The notes beneath the pieces were generated by a model. That model did no database searches. It was given only the letters and a program-made list of their open reading frames with translations, and was not told the origin of the DNA. A program made the translations under genes and the position numbers. A stretch of DNA of 7,308 nt. Origin: Octopus sinensis (Eukaryota). Positions 1 through 7,308 of this stretch are shown piece after piece. Every line of letters starts with the position of its first letter. Positions within the stretch are counted from its first letter, which is position 1. Location of the stretch: contig NW_021828916.1 in NCBI RefSeq assembly GCF_006345805.1, forward strand, positions 1 to 7,308, given 5' to 3'.

Positions 1-44
1 ACATATTTTTGATATTGTTGAGCAAACAGACAACTGACTAAATC

Positions 45-73
45 ATTATTATTATTATTATTTTTATTATTAT
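45..73. repeat. (ATT)n microsatellite, imperfect
   Basis: attattattattattatttttattattat read directly. Confidence 0.85.
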
Positions 74-407
74 ATAACATATTGAATTCTTCAGGCTGGA
101 ATTACCTATAAATGATATTTATATTGGAGAATTAGAGTGGATGCGGATGGGGGGAAGGAAGAATATTTTTAAATCCTTCATTTACTGATGAAGTAATTTT
201 AATTACACATAATTTTATGAGTTAAAATAAACAAAAGACACTGGAACGCCATCCTCCTCCACCGCCATTAATACAAAGATAATGAAGAACATAATCCAAC
301 CAACATCTATTTCACAAAGACACAAATATTAAAGTAAACAATATTCTTGAAAAAAAATTTCTCCTTCTCATACATACTCATACATACGCTTATACTCATA
401 CAGACAA

Positions 408-441
<34 letters not shown>

Positions 442-482
442 GCATACATACATGTATATATACATAAATATATACATGTATG

Positions 483-519
<37 letters not shown>

Positions 520-595
520 TATATACATGTATATATATAGATTATATATATACATACATACATATATACATAAATACATATATACATACATATAT

Positions 596-640
<45 letters not shown>

Positions 641-731
641 TATACATACATATATACATAGGTATATGCATGCATATATATATAGATATATACATACACA
701 CATATATACTTACATATATACATACATATAT

Positions 732-762
<31 letters not shown>

Positions 763-792
763 ATATATTATATATATATATATATATATTAT
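408..792. repeat. Compound (TA)n/(TACA)n microsatellite
   Basis: Almost continuous TA dinucleotide runs interspersed with TACA/CATG. It explains the Y/I/M-rich ORFs at 307-735, 347-661 and 519-701. Confidence 0.97.
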
Positions 793-966
793 ATTAATTA
801 ATAAGGGTGAGAGAATTAGATACTAATTTAATAGTATATCCATTCAACACCAAGTGGCCTAGTGCTCCGAGAAACCTGGATTATTATAATATTTTATAAT
901 ATATTATAATATTTTTACAAATAAATATAAGAGAGTGGTCACTATATGGCTCACTCTAGCACCAGT
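793..966 (-). repeat. 174-bp inverted partial copy of the 535-bp tandem unit
   Basis: 793-966 is the reverse complement of 1173-1346 (e.g. AAGGGTGAGAGAATTAG vs CTAATTCTCTCACCCTT; CTCTAGCACCAGT vs ACTGGTGCTAGAG), differing only slightly in the TATTT run near 920/1213. Confidence 0.97.
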
Positions 967-976
967 GGATTTCATC

Positions 977-1072
977 CAGATAGTTTTGGCCGATGAGCTA
1001 CAAGTGGATTTTTTTGTAAGTAAAATTACATTTAATTCATTAATAGCGAAACAATTGTCCCAAAATAATCTG
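977..1072 (+). ncRNA. Type I hammerhead ribozyme, copy 1 (predicted cleavage after C1059)
   Basis: Stem I CAGAT-AG-TTTTGG (977-989) / CCAAAA-TA-ATCTG (1060-1072); core CCGATGA 990-996; stem II GCTA 997-1000 / TAGC 1044-1047; GAAA 1048-1051; stem III AC-AATT-GT; GTC triplet 1057-1059. Confidence 0.88.
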
Positions 1073-1513
1073 TATTTTTGTTATTCTTTATTTGCCCTGT
1101 CCGTGTGAGCTAACAATCGTACTGACTTTCATGGGAAACATGTATTTTTAGTGGTTGAAACCTTTTGGATTAACTGGTGCTAGAGTGAGCCATATAGTGA
1201 CCACTCTCTTATATTATTTTGTAAAAATATTATAATATATTATAAAATATTATAATAATCCAGGTTTCTCGGAGCACTAGGCCACTTGGTGTTGAATGGA
1301 TATACTATTAAATTAGTATCTAATTCTCTCACCCTTATTAATTAATTATAATTATGCAGCATTTATTTCTAAATGCTGTATTTGTTTTCCGTGAAAGTTT
1401 GGCGCGCTGTTAGTTGGGGCATTTGAATTATAACGTCGGATGTAATCAATTGAACCACACACGCGTATTTATCGTTATGGTAAAATCTGGCGTGTGATTG
1501 AGTGGATTTCATC

Positions 1514-1605
1514 CAGATAGTTTTGGCCGATGAGCTACAAGTGGATATTTTTGTAAGTAAAATTACATTTAATTCATTAATAGCGAAACATTGTCCCAAA
1601 TTCTG
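1514..1605 (+). ncRNA. Type I hammerhead ribozyme, copy 2, with altered stem III and stem I (predicted site after C1595)
   Basis: Same core CCGATGA...TAGCGAAAC, but stem III reads ACATTGT (palindrome broken) and the 3' strand of stem I is shortened to CCAAATTCTG. Confidence 0.7.
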
Positions 1606-2044
1606 TATTTTTGTTATTCTTTATTTGCCCTGTCCGTGTGAGCTAACAATCGTACTGACTTTCATGGGAAACATGTATTTTTAGTGGTTGAAACCTTTTG
1701 GATTAACTGGTGCTAGAGTGAGCCATATAGTGACCACTCTCTTATATTTATTTTGTAAAAATATTATAATATATTATAAAATATTATAATAATCCAGGTT
1801 TCTCGGAGCACTAGGCCACTTGGTGTTGAATGGATATACTATTAAATTAGTATCTAATTCTCTCACCCTTATTAATTAATTATAATTATGCTGCATTTAT
1901 TTCTAAATGCTGTATTTGTTTTCCGTGAAAGTTGGCGCGCTGTTAGTTGGGGCATTTGAATTATAACATCGGATGTAATCAATTGAACCACACGCGTATT
2001 TATCGTTATGGTAAAATCTGGCGTGTGATTGAGTGGATTTCATC

Positions 2045-2137
2045 CAGATAGTTTTGGCCGATGAGCTACAAGTGGATATTTTGTAAGTAAAATACTTTAA
2101 TTCATTAATAGCGAAACAATTGTCCCAAAATAATCTG
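2045..2137 (+). ncRNA. Type I hammerhead ribozyme, copy 3 (predicted cleavage after C2124)
   Basis: TTTTGG-CCGATGA-GCTA...TAGC-GAAACAATTGTC-CCAAAATAATCTG intact; the tip of stem II has small deletions. Confidence 0.82.
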
Positions 2138-2573
2138 TTTTTGTTATTCTTTATTTGCCCTGTCCGTGTGAGCTAACATCGTACTGACTTTCATGGAAAC
2201 ATGTATTTTTAGTGGTTGAAACCTTTTGGATTAACTGGTGCTAGAGTGAGCCATATAGTGACCACTCTCTTATATTTTATTGTAAAAATATTATAATATA
2301 TTATAAAATATTATAATAATCCAGGTTTCTCGGAGCACTAGGCCACTTGGTGTTGAATGGATATACTATTAAATTAGTATCTAATTCTCTCACCCTTATT
2401 AACTAATTATAATTATGCTGCATTTATTTCTAAATGCTGTATTGTTTTCCGGTGAAAGTTTGGCGCGCTGTAGTTGTGGGGCATTTGAATTATAACGTCG
2501 GATGTAATCAATTGAAACACACGCGTATTTATCGTTATGGTAAAATCTGGCGTGTGATTGAGTGGATTTCATC

Positions 2574-2668
2574 CAGATAGTTTTGGCGATGAGCTACAAG
2601 TGGATTTTTTTGTAAGTAAAATTACATTTAATTCATTAATAGCGAAACAATTGTCCCAAAATAATCTG
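2574..2668 (+). ncRNA. Type I hammerhead ribozyme, copy 4, with a 1-nt core deletion (site after C2655)
   Basis: Reads TTTTGG-CGATGA (one C missing from the core); the remainder is intact. Either defective or an assembly indel. Confidence 0.65.
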
Positions 2669-3107
2669 TATTTTTGTTATTCTTTATTTGCCCTGTCCGT
2701 GTGAGCTAACAATCGTACTGACTTTCATGGGAAACATGTATTTTTAGTGGTTGAAACCTTTTGGATTAACTGGTGCTAGAGTGAGCCATATAGTGACCAC
2801 TCTCTTATATTTATTTTGTAAAAATATTATAATATATTATAAAATATTATAATAATCCAGGTTTCTCGGAGCACTAGGCCACTTGGTGTTGAATGGAATA
2901 TACTATTAAATTAGTATCTAATTCTCTCACCTTATTAATTAATTATAATTATGCTGCATTTATTTCTAAATGCTGTATTTGTTTTCCGTGAAAGTTTGGC
3001 GCGCTGTTAGTTGGGGCATTTGAATTATAACGTCGGATGAATCAATTGAACCACACGCGTATTTATCGTTATGGTAAAATCTGGCGTGTGATTGAGTGGA
3101 TTTCATC

Positions 3108-3203
3108 CAGATAGTTTTGGCCGATGAGCTACAAGTGGATTTTTTTGTAAGTAAAATTACATTTAATTCATTAATAGCGAAACAATTGTCCCAAAATAAT
3201 CTG
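3108..3203 (+). ncRNA. Type I hammerhead ribozyme, copy 5 (predicted cleavage after C3190)
   Basis: Identical to copy 1 in all stems and core. Confidence 0.88.
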
Positions 3204-3646
3204 TATTTTTGTTATTCTTTATTTGCCCTGTCCGTGTGAGCTAACAATCGTACTGACTTTCATGGGAAACATGTATTTTTAGTGGTTGAAACCTTTTGGA
3301 TTAACTGGTGCTAGAGTGAGCCATATAGTGACCACTCTCTTATATTTATTTTGTAAAAATATTATAATATATTATAAAATATTATAATAATCCAGGTTTC
3401 TCGGAGCACTAGGCCACTTGGTGTTGAATGGATATACTATTAAATTAGTATCTAATTCTCTCACCCTTATTAATTAATTATAATTATGCTGCATTTATTT
3501 CTAAATGCTGTATTTGTTTTCCGTGAAAGTTTGGCGCGCTGTTAGTTGGGGCATTTGAATTATAACGTCGGATGTAATCAATTGAACCACACGCGTATTT
3601 ATCGTTATGGTAAAATCTGGCGTGGTGTGATTGAGTGGATTTCATC

Positions 3647-3742
3647 CAGATAGTTTTGGCCGATGAGCTACAAGTGGATTTTTTTGTAAGTAAAATTACA
3701 TTTAATTCATTAATAGCGAAACAATTGTCCCAAAATAATCTG
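3647..3742 (+). ncRNA. Type I hammerhead ribozyme, copy 6 (predicted cleavage after C3729)
   Basis: Identical to copy 1 in all stems and core. Confidence 0.88.
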
Positions 3743-3891
3743 TATTTTTGTTATTCTTTATTTGCCCTGTCCGTGTGAGCTAACAATCGTACTGACTTTC
3801 ATGGGAAACATGTATTTTTAGTGGTTGAAACCTTTTGGATTAACTGGTGCTAGAGTGAGCCATATAGTGACCACTCTCTTATATTTATTTT

Positions 3892-3946
3892 ATATATATT
3901 ATATAATATATATATATATATATAATATATAATATATATATATTTA
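3892..3946. repeat. (TA)n microsatellite, imperfect
   Basis: TA run separating the end of the array from the LINE 3' end. Confidence 0.93.
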
Positions 3947-5411
3947 TAACTTAGAATAACTTAGAAAGGTTTGGTTTGGCCAGTATTGGCCCAGGCCATG
4001 TCTAACTTAATAGCACCACCTGGCGAAGTCTTTCAATTCAGGATTTGGGCACCAAGGCCCATTCGAGCTGACAGTTATTGTTTGCAGAGACATATCTTGG
4101 TGTGGATGGTTTGTCCGGCTCTGTTTGAAGGAATTTGTCCAAAGACTTCTTGAATTTTGTGTGGTCAGTTTCTGTTTTGACGTGTCCTGGTGTAATGATG
4201 AAGAGAGCGGTTCCAATTGAGATGAAATGATTGTGCCGTATTGTTGTTATGAGATGCGATTTAGATATTTGTTGTGGACGGATGGCACGTGGTCTAAGCC
4301 TTGGATGTATTTTGAAGGTGATGCCAACATCATTCGGACAGTGCTGATGGAATATTTTCCACATCATACATATAATGTAGCGTTCACGGCGTCGTTGGAG
4401 TGAAAACAGTTTCAGTTTCACTAGTCTACCCTAGTAGTCAAGGTCTGACATGCCATCTATCTTTTTTGTGATTGACCGTTGGGGAGCTTCAATTCTCATA
4501 ATATTTTGTTTTGTGTAGGGAGACCACAGTGGACAGCAGTATTCAAGGTGGGGTCGGGCAAAAGTGGAGAAGAGAAGGATAATGGTGTGGGAATATCTCG
4601 ACTGGAAGGTTCTGAGAATCCAGGAACACATTCTGCGGGCCATATCAACTTTGCTGCTTATATGTGTAGCCCAGCTTATGTTGTTGTCCACTGTTACTCC
4701 CAAGTCTCTGATGTTGTTAGACGCCATGAGAATTTCTCCAGAAGGAAGGGAGTATGGGAGTTTTAGAGCGTCCTCCCTTCCAAAGTGGATCAGTTCGAAT
4801 TTGTCTTCGTTTAGTAACATGTTATTCTTTTCCGCCCATTGGAGAACAGCCAGTAGGTCTGACTGAAGGCTTATTCGGTCATCCACGCCATTGATGACCT
4901 TCTGGAGCTTGGAATCATCAGCGAAAGTTCTGACGTAACTGTGTTTGATGGTGTCAGTAATATCATTTATGTAGATGATGAAGAGAAGTGGGCCCAACAC
5001 AGTGCCTTGTGGGACACCACTGCTGACTTTGGCTGGGCTGGATTTGACTCCTTCGACTACAACATGTTGGGTTCTGTTAGACAGGAAGCACTTGATCCAC
5101 TGCAGCAGCTTTCCAGTGACACCAATATTGGACAGCTTTCTCAAAAGGATCTTATGATCAACCCTGTCAAAGGCCTTGCTGAAATCAAGGAAGATGACAT
5201 CAGTGTTGGAACCCTCTCCCAAGGCTCTCAAAATGATGCAGTAGCTGCGTCAGGCAATCCTTTCCATTACGGAATCCATGCTGGTTGGAGTTCAGCATAT
5301 TATGACTCTCAAGGAAGTGAGTCATACGCGATCTCAGCACTCTCTCAAATACCTTAATGATATGAGAGGTGAGTGAGATTGGACGGTAATTCACGGCAAG
5401 CGATTTGTTTC
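3947..5411 (-). mobile_element. 5'-truncated non-LTR retrotransposon (LINE), CR1-group-like
   Basis: Minus-strand RT motifs KSLAVNYRPISLTS, QHGFR, FLDFSKAFDRVDH, GVPQGTVLGPLLFIIYINDI, FADDSK, DLGV, RPHLEYCCPLWSP, LQRRRERY and SLDKFL, followed by a short 3' UTR ending in a 10-bp tandem repeat (TAACTTAGAA x2 on + strand, 3947-3966). Confidence 0.93.
4038..5406 (-). pseudogene. Disrupted LINE ORF2 fragment (reverse transcriptase and C-terminal region; endonuclease domain absent)
   Basis: Three ORF-track pieces (5200-5394, 4431-5231, 4038-4421) join into one ORF2. They are separated by a frameshift near 5230 (HHFE to LRALGEG) and an in-frame TAG at 4431-4433 (LDY*GRL, probably TGG>TAG). Confidence 0.92.
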
Positions 5412-5662
5412 ATACATCATCATCATATTCATCATCATCATTTAACGTCCGTTTTCCGCGCTAGCACGGGTTGGACGGTTTCGACCGGGGTCTGGGGAGC
5501 TCGGGACTGCCCCAGGCTCCAGTCTAGTCTGGCAGTGTTTCTACAGCTGGATGCCCTTCCTAACGCCAACCACTCCGCGAGTGTAGTGGGTGTTTTTTAC
5601 GTGCCACCTGCACAGGTGCCAGAGGGGTCTGGCATCGGACACGTTCGGATGGTGCTTTTTAT
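5412..5662 (-). mobile_element. Truncated SINE/LINE-type 3' end with (GAT)n tail
   Basis: (CAT)n at 5412-5441 is a (GAT)n tail on the - strand, directly preceded by a stem-loop (CGTCC 5446-5450 / GGACG 5473-5477). The CATCATCATTTAACGTCCG...GGATGCCCTTCCTAACGCCAACC sequence resembles an abundant octopus retro-repeat (from memory, not verified by search). Confidence 0.65.
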
Positions 5663-6450
5663 GGGGGGGGGGTGCAGAAATATAGGGGAGCACCAGTGGG
5701 AGGGGTGGTTCAGAGGACAGGTTCTAGGCAAGTAGAACGTAGGATATCGAGAGAGGGGTAATGCATGGTGAAATAGCGTATTGAAGAGGGGGGTTCAAAG
5801 AGTAGACACCTATAATGGTGGTGGGGGGGTGCAGAAATATGGGGGAGCACCAGTGGGAGGGGTGGTTCAGAGGACAGGTTCTAGGCAAGTAGAACGTAGG
5901 ATATCGAGAGAGGGGTAATGCATGGTGAAATAGCGTATTGAAGAGGGGGTTCAAAGAGTAGACACCTATAATGGTGGTGGGGGGTGCAGAAATATAGGGG
6001 AGCACCAGTGGGAGGGGTGGTTCAGAGGACAGGTTCTAGGCAAGTAGAACGTAGGATATCGAGAGAGGGGTAATGCATGGAGAAATAGCGTATTGAAGAG
6101 GGGGGTTCAAAGAGTAGACACCTATAATGGTGGTGGGGGGGTGCAGAAATATAGGGGAGCACCAGTGGGAGGGGTGGTTCAGAGGACAGGTTCTAGGCAA
6201 GTAGAACGTAGGATGTCGTGAGAGGGGTAATGCATGGTGAAATAGCGTATTGAAGAGGGGGGTTCAAAGAGTAGACACCTATAATGGTGGTGGGGGGTGC
6301 AGAAATATAGGGGAGCACCAGTGGGAGGGGTGGTTCAGAGGACAGGTTCTAGGCAAGTAGAACGTAGGATATCGAGAGAGGGGTAATGCATGGTGAAATA
6401 GCGTATTGAAGAGGGGGGTTCAAAGAGTAGACACCTATAATGGTGGTGGG
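5663..6450. repeat. G-rich minisatellite, 5 x ~156 bp
   Basis: TGCAGAAATAT(A/G)GGGGAGCACCAG recurs at 5673, 5830, 5985, 6142 and 6298. Copies differ mainly in G-run length. Confidence 0.97.
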
Positions 6451-6527
6451 AGAAACGACATCCGGTATAGTTGGAGCAAAATAGAGATATCCGGTATTGG
6501 TGGTGGGGGTGGGTAGGGCTGGCCCGC

Positions 6528-6590
6528 CGCGAAGAATCGGCAGCCAATTTCTATCAGCCCTGTAAGGGAGATAGATCTTAAATATCTATA
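6528..6590 (+). repeat. 63-bp perfect direct repeat, copy 1
   Basis: CGCGAAGAATCGGCAGCCAATTTCTATCAGCCCTGTAAGGGAGATAGATCTTAAATATCTATA is identical to 6894-6956. Confidence 0.95.
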
Positions 6591-6672
6591 ACGATAACTA
6601 GTGAATTATACAGAATATGCAAAAACGAGGCGAGGCTGAAATAGTAAACAGAGTGGCGACTAGGGGGATCAG

Positions 6673-6703
6673 AATAATAATAATTAATAAATAATAATAA
6701 TAA
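6673..6703. repeat. (AAT)n microsatellite, imperfect
   Basis: aataataataattaataaataataataataa read directly. Confidence 0.85.
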
Positions 6704-6893
6704 ATAGAAATACGGGATGAATTAAAGTTCAAGGATTTCTTATCTTGGGATCACTTCGTTTACGGACAGTCTTGGCAAAAGGAATTCGGAATCAAGAATG
6801 AGGCAGGTTACTAGCTTAAGTATGCATAGCCATGGCGAGGAGTAGGAAGAGAGGAGTCCAGACAGACAATGTAAAAAGAGGGGGAGAGAAGGG

Positions 6894-6953
6894 CGCGAAG
6901 AATCGGCAGCCAATTTCTATCAGCCCTGTAAGGGAGATAGATCTTAAATATCT

Positions 6954-6956
<3 letters not shown>
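6894..6956 (+). repeat. 63-bp perfect direct repeat, copy 2
   Basis: Identical to 6528-6590; runs directly into a (TA)n tract. Confidence 0.95.
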
Positions 6957-6992
<36 letters not shown>

Positions 6993-7004
6993 ATATATAT
7001 ATAT
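6957..7004. repeat. (TA)n microsatellite
   Basis: Continuous TA run. Confidence 0.95.
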
Positions 7005-7115
7005 TTATACATAATGCATGCATTCATACATATACGTGTATATAACCCACATACGCATATATACTATCTAAAACAAAGAAAACCCGATCATGTCCAAAGG
7101 GTAGTACTGGATAGG

Positions 7116-7223
7116 GTGAGTACTTTACATAGTTTTCGGGTGTAATTAAATGTAAATTATAATGTCTATTTGTTAAAGTTAACAGCAGAAAATTTGCATG
7201 TGTATGTTTGTCTCTTCTTGCAG
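7116..7223 (+). other. Candidate 108-bp spliceosomal intron
   Basis: Consensus donor AGG|GTGAGT at 7116 and polypyrimidine acceptor TTTGTCTCTTCTTGCAG ending at 7223, with an AT-rich interior. No transcript evidence and no recognisable protein. Confidence 0.35.
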
Positions 7224-7308
7224 GAATGCAAGCGTGCCCTTCGCATGCGAAAATCAAACGCACCTACATCTTAAACTGTCATGTCTTTTATTAATATTTA
7301 AAGGGAAG

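Follow-up and report, generated by a model that had tools for sequence, protein, structure and literature searches.

A hammerhead-bearing tandem array from Octopus sinensis as a candidate non-LTR retrozyme with a variant ribozyme core

Retrozymes and the octopus array

Non-long terminal repeat (non-LTR) retrozymes are tandem, AT-rich and non-coding repeats that carry type I hammerhead ribozymes and give rise to abundant, self-paired linear and circular RNAs, which are probably circularised by tRNA ligase and probably mobilised by Penelope-like elements (PLEs) (PMC7229834). They are known in molluscs, and lengths of ~170-400 nt are typical for invertebrates (PMC7229834). Here, we analysed a 7,308-nt stretch of DNA from Octopus sinensis (contig NW_021828916.1, positions 1 to 7,308; hereinafter, the window), in which a ~535-bp repeat carrying a hammerhead motif forms a tandem array on the plus strand (964-3890). 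With some reservation, we favour the view that this array is a non-autonomous, hammerhead-bearing tandem retroelement of the non-LTR retrozyme type, and it appears to belong to the animal retrozymes already known and not to a new kind of element.

As judged from direct-repeat families, alignment of the units, the list of open reading frames (ORFs) and GC content, the array consists of 5.5 head-to-tail units of 529-539 bp, with starts 527-539 bp apart and an overall GC content of 33%. The initial annotation of this sequence counted six copies at 964-3891; the tandem array is real and the motif is indeed present six times, but the sixth unit is incomplete and the array stops at 3890, within an AT-rich stretch. 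In line with the definition of retrozymes, the unit is a plain head-to-tail repeat with a GC content below 50% and without LTRs, primer binding site (PBS) or polypurine tract (PPT). It is also non-coding, the longest internal ORF (76 aa) being created solely by an indel. Differences between the units are almost all indels of 1-3 nt, often in homopolymers, with very few substitutions, a pattern that suggests recent amplification, noise of a long-read assembly, or both.

A further property expected of a retrozyme is a stable, highly self-paired monomer RNA, and this is what is predicted here. The minimum free energy (MFE) of the circular plus-strand monomer is -145.8 kcal/mol, compared to -109.0 ± 5.7 kcal/mol for shuffled sequences (z = -6.45), with 68% of the bases paired and with helices I and II of the hammerhead persisting in the fold. 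For the circular minus-strand monomer, the corresponding values are -105.9 kcal/mol versus -81.2 ± 5.2 kcal/mol (z = -4.75), with 59% of the bases paired. The minus strand carries no hammerhead, no other Rfam ribozyme and no tRNA-like part.

The length of ~535 nt had been considered unusually large and hence indicative of an undescribed kind of element. This argument does not hold, since the consensus lengths published for non-LTR retrozymes extend from 51 to 972 bp and average 650 bp in ray-finned fish (10.64898/2026.07.22.740005), and retrozyme circular RNAs range from 150 to >1000 nt (PMC7229834). The octopus unit (529-539 bp) falls well inside these bounds, and we therefore rejected unit size as evidence of novelty.

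The non-LTR retrozymes of the mussel Mytilus galloprovincialis (350-390 bp) and of Acropora millepora (220-240 bp; PMC7229834) share with the octopus array the head-to-tail, non-coding and low-GC organisation, the single type I hammerhead per unit and the highly self-paired predicted monomer RNA, and the mussel is likewise a mollusc. By contrast, the octopus unit is 535 bp long, and its hammerhead has C at position 4, a 39-nt hairpin in loop 2 and a weak palindromic helix III. In the satellite 2 retrozymes of newt and axolotl (HHR_Amex1/2, Rtz_331/353; PMC7229834), the motif is also of type I, and a palindromic tetraloop closes its helix III of 1-2 bp. However, these elements differ from the octopus array in sequence, host phylum and unit length, and their motifs, unlike that of the octopus, retain U4 and a short loop 2 that makes the conserved contacts with loop 1. 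Plant LTR retrozymes (PMC4918200) are similarly non-autonomous and hammerhead-processed, with a circular RNA intermediate of comparable size (600-1000 nt), but they carry type III hammerheads within LTRs, a PBS and a PPT, produce 4-bp target site duplications (TSDs) and depend on Gypsy for mobilisation; none of these features is discernible at the octopus array.

The hammerhead motif and its copies

According to Cervera and de la Peña (PMC4209133), most metazoan type I hammerheads have a helix I of 6 bp, a helix II of 4 bp and a helix III of only 1-2 bp closed by a small palindromic loop; when they occur in tandem repeats, these motifs are predicted to function as dimers. The octopus motif matches this build, including the G10.1-C11.1 pair. 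The string CAGATAGTTTTGG…GTC/CCAAA…TCTG is present six times, starting at 977, 1514, 2045, 2574, 3108 and 3647, that is, at the same place in each unit. The nominal cuts after GTC fall at 1059, 1595, 2124, 2655, 3190 and 3729 and yield predicted monomers of 529-539 nt, exactly as the initial annotation had it. The back-junction of the predicted circle would read …CAAUUGUC|CCAAAAUAAUCUG… (…UUGUC|CCAAAAU… in RNA).

The three helices are arranged around the core with helix I open, as is characteristic of type I hammerheads. Helix I consists of UUUUGG/CCAAAA (6 bp, or 7 with a G·U pair) and, beyond a small internal loop, of CAGAU/AUCUG (5 bp). Helix II is formed by GCUA/UAGC (4 bp), with the conserved G10.1-C11.1 at its base, and continues into a hairpin; loop 2 is a 43-nt segment that holds this 39-nt hairpin. 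Helix III comprises 2 bp (A-U and C-G) closing a palindromic AAUU loop. Both stems and the GAAAC..GUC segment are thus as originally described, and the G12-A13-A14 segment, the A15.1-U16.1 pair and H17 are represented by GAAA, C..G, U and C17 in all six copies. In copy 5, which we take as the reference (3108-3203, plus strand), the 5' strand of helix I occupies 3108-3112 and 3115-3120, the core CCGAUGA 3121-3127 and helix II 3128-3131 (GCUA) and 3175-3178 (UAGC), with the 43-nt hairpin segment in between; GAAA follows at 3179-3182, overlapping the palindrome ACAAUUGU at 3182-3189, and C17 lies at 3190, the predicted cut being immediately after it.

The exception to this conserved architecture is the core strand. 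The consensus C3-U4-G5-A6-N7-G8-A9 (CUGANGA) is not found in any copy: copies 1, 2, 3, 5 and 6 have CCGAUGA, in which U4 is replaced by C and five of the six fixed positions match. Copy 1 (977-1072; predicted cut after 1059) has the same sequence as copies 5 and 6, the latter being likewise intact (3647-3742; predicted cut after 3729), whereas in copy 3 (2045-2137; predicted cut after 2124), the core and helices I-III are intact and indels are confined to the loop 2 hairpin. Two copies are damaged. Copy 2 (1514-1605; nominal cut after 1595) has AUU rather than AAUU in the helix III loop and lacks three bases in the 3' strand of helix I; copy 4 (2574-2668; nominal cut after 2655) has lost one C from the core (CGAUGA) and was missed by both Rfam and our descriptor. 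All copies lie on the plus strand. The description of each unit as carrying a "full" type I hammerhead is thus overstated: C4 departs from a conserved position, a deviation that was left unremarked, and two of the six copies are damaged. Copies 5 and 6 reside in consecutive units with complete type I hammerheads, and copies 1 and 3 are intact too, provided that C4 counts as complete.

Given that 1-3 nt indels of the homopolymer type resemble long-read consensus errors, the damage in copies 2 and 4 may be unreal; more generally, the indels in hammerhead copies 2-4 may stem from such errors, as may the frameshifts in a neighbouring retroelement (see below). Rare variants of the hammerhead core do exist in nature (PMC3088659). 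The same source cites a viroid U4C variant with lower in vitro activity that retained infectivity. Like the octopus motif, it carries a lone core substitution at position 4 in an otherwise complete hammerhead; unlike it, the viroid hammerhead is of type III and belongs to an infectious plant RNA. By analogy, C4 probably reduces the rate of the octopus hammerhead. With this reduction expected from U4C, and with the loop 2 hairpin, the array may be a slow or partly decayed copy of its element.

The motif is very probably hammerhead-derived. We used two descriptors on dinucleotide shuffles of the unit: a loose one, requiring three helices and permitting one core mismatch, and a strict one, following the published build, which called for 6 bp or more in helix I, 4 bp or more in helix II including G10.1-C11.1, a 15.1-16.1 segment that is palindromic and no more than a single mismatch in the core. 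The loose descriptor matched 14 of the 3000 shuffles, or two of 3000 when the exact core was demanded, whereas the strict one matched none of 40,000. Applied to both strands of the entire window, the loose descriptor found the array motifs alone, and on 33 kb of unrelated DNA, it returned two weak, minimal matches. The six motifs count as a single observation because they are copies of one another. In a search of a 111-nt segment with laxer filters, Rfam Hammerhead_1 (RF00163) aligned to 3115-3196 over the full model (1-45; 24.9 bits, E 1.9e-4), with the model segment GAAACGcgCGUC aligned to GAAACAAUUGUC at every base and GAAAC-AAUU-GUC fitting the helix III of the model.

Folding suggests how such a motif could work. 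For the 96-nt motif, the predicted MFE is -26.0 kcal/mol, with both parts of helix I and helix II kept and with the 43-nt helix II loop forming a regular hairpin. When two motifs are folded together, the MFE structure is a double hammerhead (-54.6 kcal/mol versus 2 x -26.0 kcal/mol for the monomers), in which the palindrome ACAAUUGU is predicted to form an intermolecular helix III of 8 bp, leaving both cores free. Because the 2-bp helix III lies within this 8-nt palindrome, two hammerheads can thus pair, and on the strength of the modelled folds, the octopus hammerhead probably works as a double hammerhead. Newt and axolotl retrozyme hammerheads, whose helix III is weak, are described as behaving in this way, with poor cleavage of monomers and efficient cleavage of dimers (PMC7229834).

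Insertion anatomy and neighbouring repeats

On the left, the element adjoins a long (TA)n/(ATAC)n microsatellite of ~400 bp (397-794; TRF rows 397-794 and 408-794). Sub-threshold Rfam microRNA matches (mir-297, mir-3149, mir-1277 and others) at 397-794 and 6948-7013 are low-complexity artefacts of (TA)n/(ATAC)n. Between the microsatellite and the array, an inverted-repeat search uncovered a 174-nt, 5'-truncated partial unit in inverted orientation (793-966, minus strand), which had been overlooked in the initial annotation. It is the reverse complement of 1173-1346 (99%, with 206 nt between the arms) and shares 3 nt (AGT, 964-966) with the forward array at the junction. The right flank is again a (TA)n-rich microsatellite (3891-3958; TRF rows 3880-3958), at least partly representing the 3' tail of a neighbouring long interspersed nuclear element (LINE). 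The outer ends of the element both lie where the unit is richest in TA, in two separate stretches.

Craig et al. (PMC8557442) describe PLE insertions as highly 5'-truncated, arranged in partial tandems, accompanied by an inverted truncated copy upstream and targeted to microsatellites; preference for microsatellites such as (TA)n masks the TSDs of PLEs. The octopus array displays the same combination, namely, a partial tandem, an inverted 5'-truncated copy at its 5' end and a microsatellite setting. This anatomy is a suggestive, although not exclusive, signature of PLEs; by analogy, we infer that a PLE-type enzyme inserted the array.

The neighbouring LINE is a 5'-truncated fragment on the minus strand (4038-5394, with a tail extending to ~3907), in which an RVT_1 (Pfam) reverse transcriptase is split over three frames (5200-5394, 4431-5231 and 4038-4421). 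It is not a PLE, the reverse transcriptase being of the LINE type. In a search of the protein collection, the best matches to this reverse transcriptase were 79% and 67% identical, and an exact look-up of the LINE ORF gave no match. The 3' part of the LINE (3907-4713) is 93.8% identical to positions 494-1290 of the Octopus sinensis contig VCDQ01000580.1, where the LINE copy likewise ends in a TA-rich microsatellite. Hence, the array may sit within the microsatellite tail of the LINE. Comparison of the unit with the rest of the window by BLAST returned AT-rich, low-complexity matches only and no further piece of the unit, so that the array does not continue past the LINE.

Several other repeats are found downstream. 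At 5400-5660, a (CAT)n run precedes ~230 bp of GC-rich sequence; a 120-aa ORF in this region has no Pfam match, and the GC-rich stretch may be a short interspersed nuclear element (SINE)-type interspersed repeat, similar to other cephalopod sequences. It is followed by a G-rich tandem repeat (5662-6450; five copies of 157 bp, 97% matches) with a strong GC skew, in which neither an Rfam match nor a hammerhead-like motif was detected. Finally, a 63-bp direct repeat, CGCGAAGAATCGGCAGCCAATTTC…AAATATCTATA, is present in two identical copies (6528-6590 and 6894-6956) separated by ~300 bp, the second of which leads into a (TA)n microsatellite. The two copies might reflect a segmental duplication or mark the termini of another small element.

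Origin of the array and its implications

If the array is a retrozyme, its plus strand would be transcribed as a multimer, each unit of which would fold into a type I hammerhead. Two units would pair via the palindrome into a double hammerhead with the 8-bp helix III and cleave after GUC at 1059, 2124, 3190 and 3729, whereupon a host RNA ligase would close the cleavage products into a highly base-paired circle. The reverse transcriptase/endonuclease of a PLE would then copy this circle, or the multimer, for more than one round and insert the product into a (TA)n microsatellite, leaving a partial tandem together with an inverted truncated copy. The initial retrozyme interpretation draws support from the tandem, non-coding, low-GC unit, the canonical metazoan hammerhead, the self-paired monomer and the PLE-like insertion anatomy.

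Several observations weigh against this interpretation. The core deviates from the consensus at position 4 and indels disrupt two of the six motifs, so that the ribozyme activity of this array is uncertain. In the MFE structure of the single motif, CGAU of the core is engaged with the helix III loop, and the hammerhead-compatible fold (-21.7 kcal/mol) lies 4.3 kcal/mol above this structure. At 24.9 bits, the Rfam match falls short of the gathering score (34 bits); no hammerhead was reported by Rfam in scans of the whole window or of a 581-nt segment, and none was matched in copies 2 and 4 when these were searched. We attribute the shortfall to C4, to the poor alignment of helix II and to the 39 nt inserted in loop 2. 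Covariation, and with it any independent sign of selection, is lacking among the array copies, because the comparison covers only six near-identical copies of one array, with no informative variation in the helices. The ends of the array do not match the hammerhead cut site, TSDs are unreadable because both flanks are (TA)n-rich microsatellites, and the window contains no PLE, the only nearby reverse transcriptase being that of the degraded LINE. Searches elsewhere were also negative: for the ORF spanning the hammerhead, neither exact look-up nor a homologue search found anything in a protein collection nearly devoid of octopod sequences; two pattern scans of viral contigs yielded no match to the unit pattern; and a metagenome scan with a degenerate pattern returned one unrelated human gut contig alone.

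The match in the human gut contig (9885-9954, minus strand) has a CUGAUGA core, a GCUA/UAGC helix II and GAAAC, with no obvious helix I or III. The contig shows no similarity to the octopod unit, and from its sequence, the match is probably due to chance or represents an unrelated bacterial or phage motif. BLAST comparison of the unit with this contig and with VCDQ01000580.1 (20.5 kb), the only octopod DNA compared, gave low-complexity matches only and no copy of the unit. In the searchable literature on cephalopod hammerheads and retrozymes and on octopus satellites, we found no description of this family.

The main alternative, which we consider rather unlikely, is that the array is a dead relic, in which the unit derives from a hammerhead-bearing retrozyme or a PLE pseudo-LTR but its ribozyme was inactivated by U4C, the array now persisting or expanding merely as a plain satellite, by unequal crossing-over or replication slippage and with no RNA cycle. 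U4C affects a conserved core position and is reported to cause a considerable loss of activity in vitro, although there is one natural case of its being tolerated in vivo (PMC3088659). Further disruptive indels in two of the six copies point in the same direction, unless they are errors of the long-read assembly, and so does the sub-threshold Rfam score. The near identity of the copies fits recent DNA-level amplification as well as it fits rolling-circle reverse transcription. However, four copies retain every other hammerhead feature, among them the 8-nt palindrome and the two segments of helix I, and the strong fold of the plus-strand monomer is preserved. Moreover, the presence of an inverted truncated copy and of (TA)n on either side speaks for retrotransposition and against satellite growth in situ.

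We consider it improbable that, instead of being a separate retrozyme, the array consists of stacked pseudo-LTRs or 5'-truncated copies from an autonomous PLE, the coding part of which is located elsewhere or failed to be copied. PLE insertions share the 5' truncation, partial tandems, inverted truncated upstream copy and (TA)n targets with the octopus array (PMC8557442), PLE hammerheads are located in pseudo-LTRs and, like the octopus motif, are suited to dimerisation with a long helix II (PMC4209133), and homology between retrozymes and pseudo-LTRs has been reported for Xenopus. Nonetheless, the 5.5 circularly permuted units, which contain no ORF fragment, point to a unit-length template of 535 nt rather than to the 3' ends of a 3-4 kb element, and neither the unit nor the window has an ORF for a PLE reverse transcriptase or GIY-YIG endonuclease. 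Furthermore, most PLE hammerheads are minimal ones, in which helix II is longer and helix I shorter, whereas helices I and III of the octopus motif are canonical (6/4/2 bp for helices I-III; PMC4209133). Chance resemblance of an ordinary AT-rich satellite to a hammerhead appears very improbable. The mismatch in the core, the non-independence of the six copies, the silence of Rfam at the scale of the window, the loose descriptor's false-match rate of ~0.5% per shuffled unit and its two weak matches in unrelated DNA would be compatible with it. By contrast, the failure of any shuffle to reproduce the strict architecture and the full-length Rfam alignment argue otherwise, as do the continuation of helix II into a regular hairpin, the extension of helix I past the internal loop and the helix III palindrome that permits dimerisation. 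A tandem, non-coding, structured unit is, in addition, the known setting of such ribozymes.

Within the retrozyme interpretation, it is conceivable, and we propose it only tentatively, that the array represents a cephalopod retrozyme family whose hammerhead works with C4, the substitution being compensated by the helix II hairpin and by obligatory dimerisation via the 8-nt palindrome. We found no animal genomic type I hammerhead family with C4 in the searchable literature. A 2026 survey screened genomes with rnabob descriptors for canonical and minimal type I hammerheads (10.64898/2026.07.22.740005), and if these demand CUGANGA, the C4 core would escape them. A C4 family would be invisible to CUGANGA descriptors and to Rfam thresholds, so that censuses of retrozymes would undercount hammerhead-bearing circular RNA elements.

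Should the ribozyme prove inactive, the element would be an ordinary decayed repeat. The anatomy of its junctions, with the inverted truncated copy, the TA-rich array ends and the microsatellite, provides a small measure of sequence-level support for the mobilisation of retrozymes by the PLE machinery. If the ribozyme is active, the array would extend hammerhead-processed circular RNA retroelements to cephalopods and would provide a natural animal case of a U4C core tolerated together with a large insertion in loop 2. It would then also serve as a guide to how far search descriptors should be relaxed and as an example of a weakened core rescued by dimerisation and peripheral structure.

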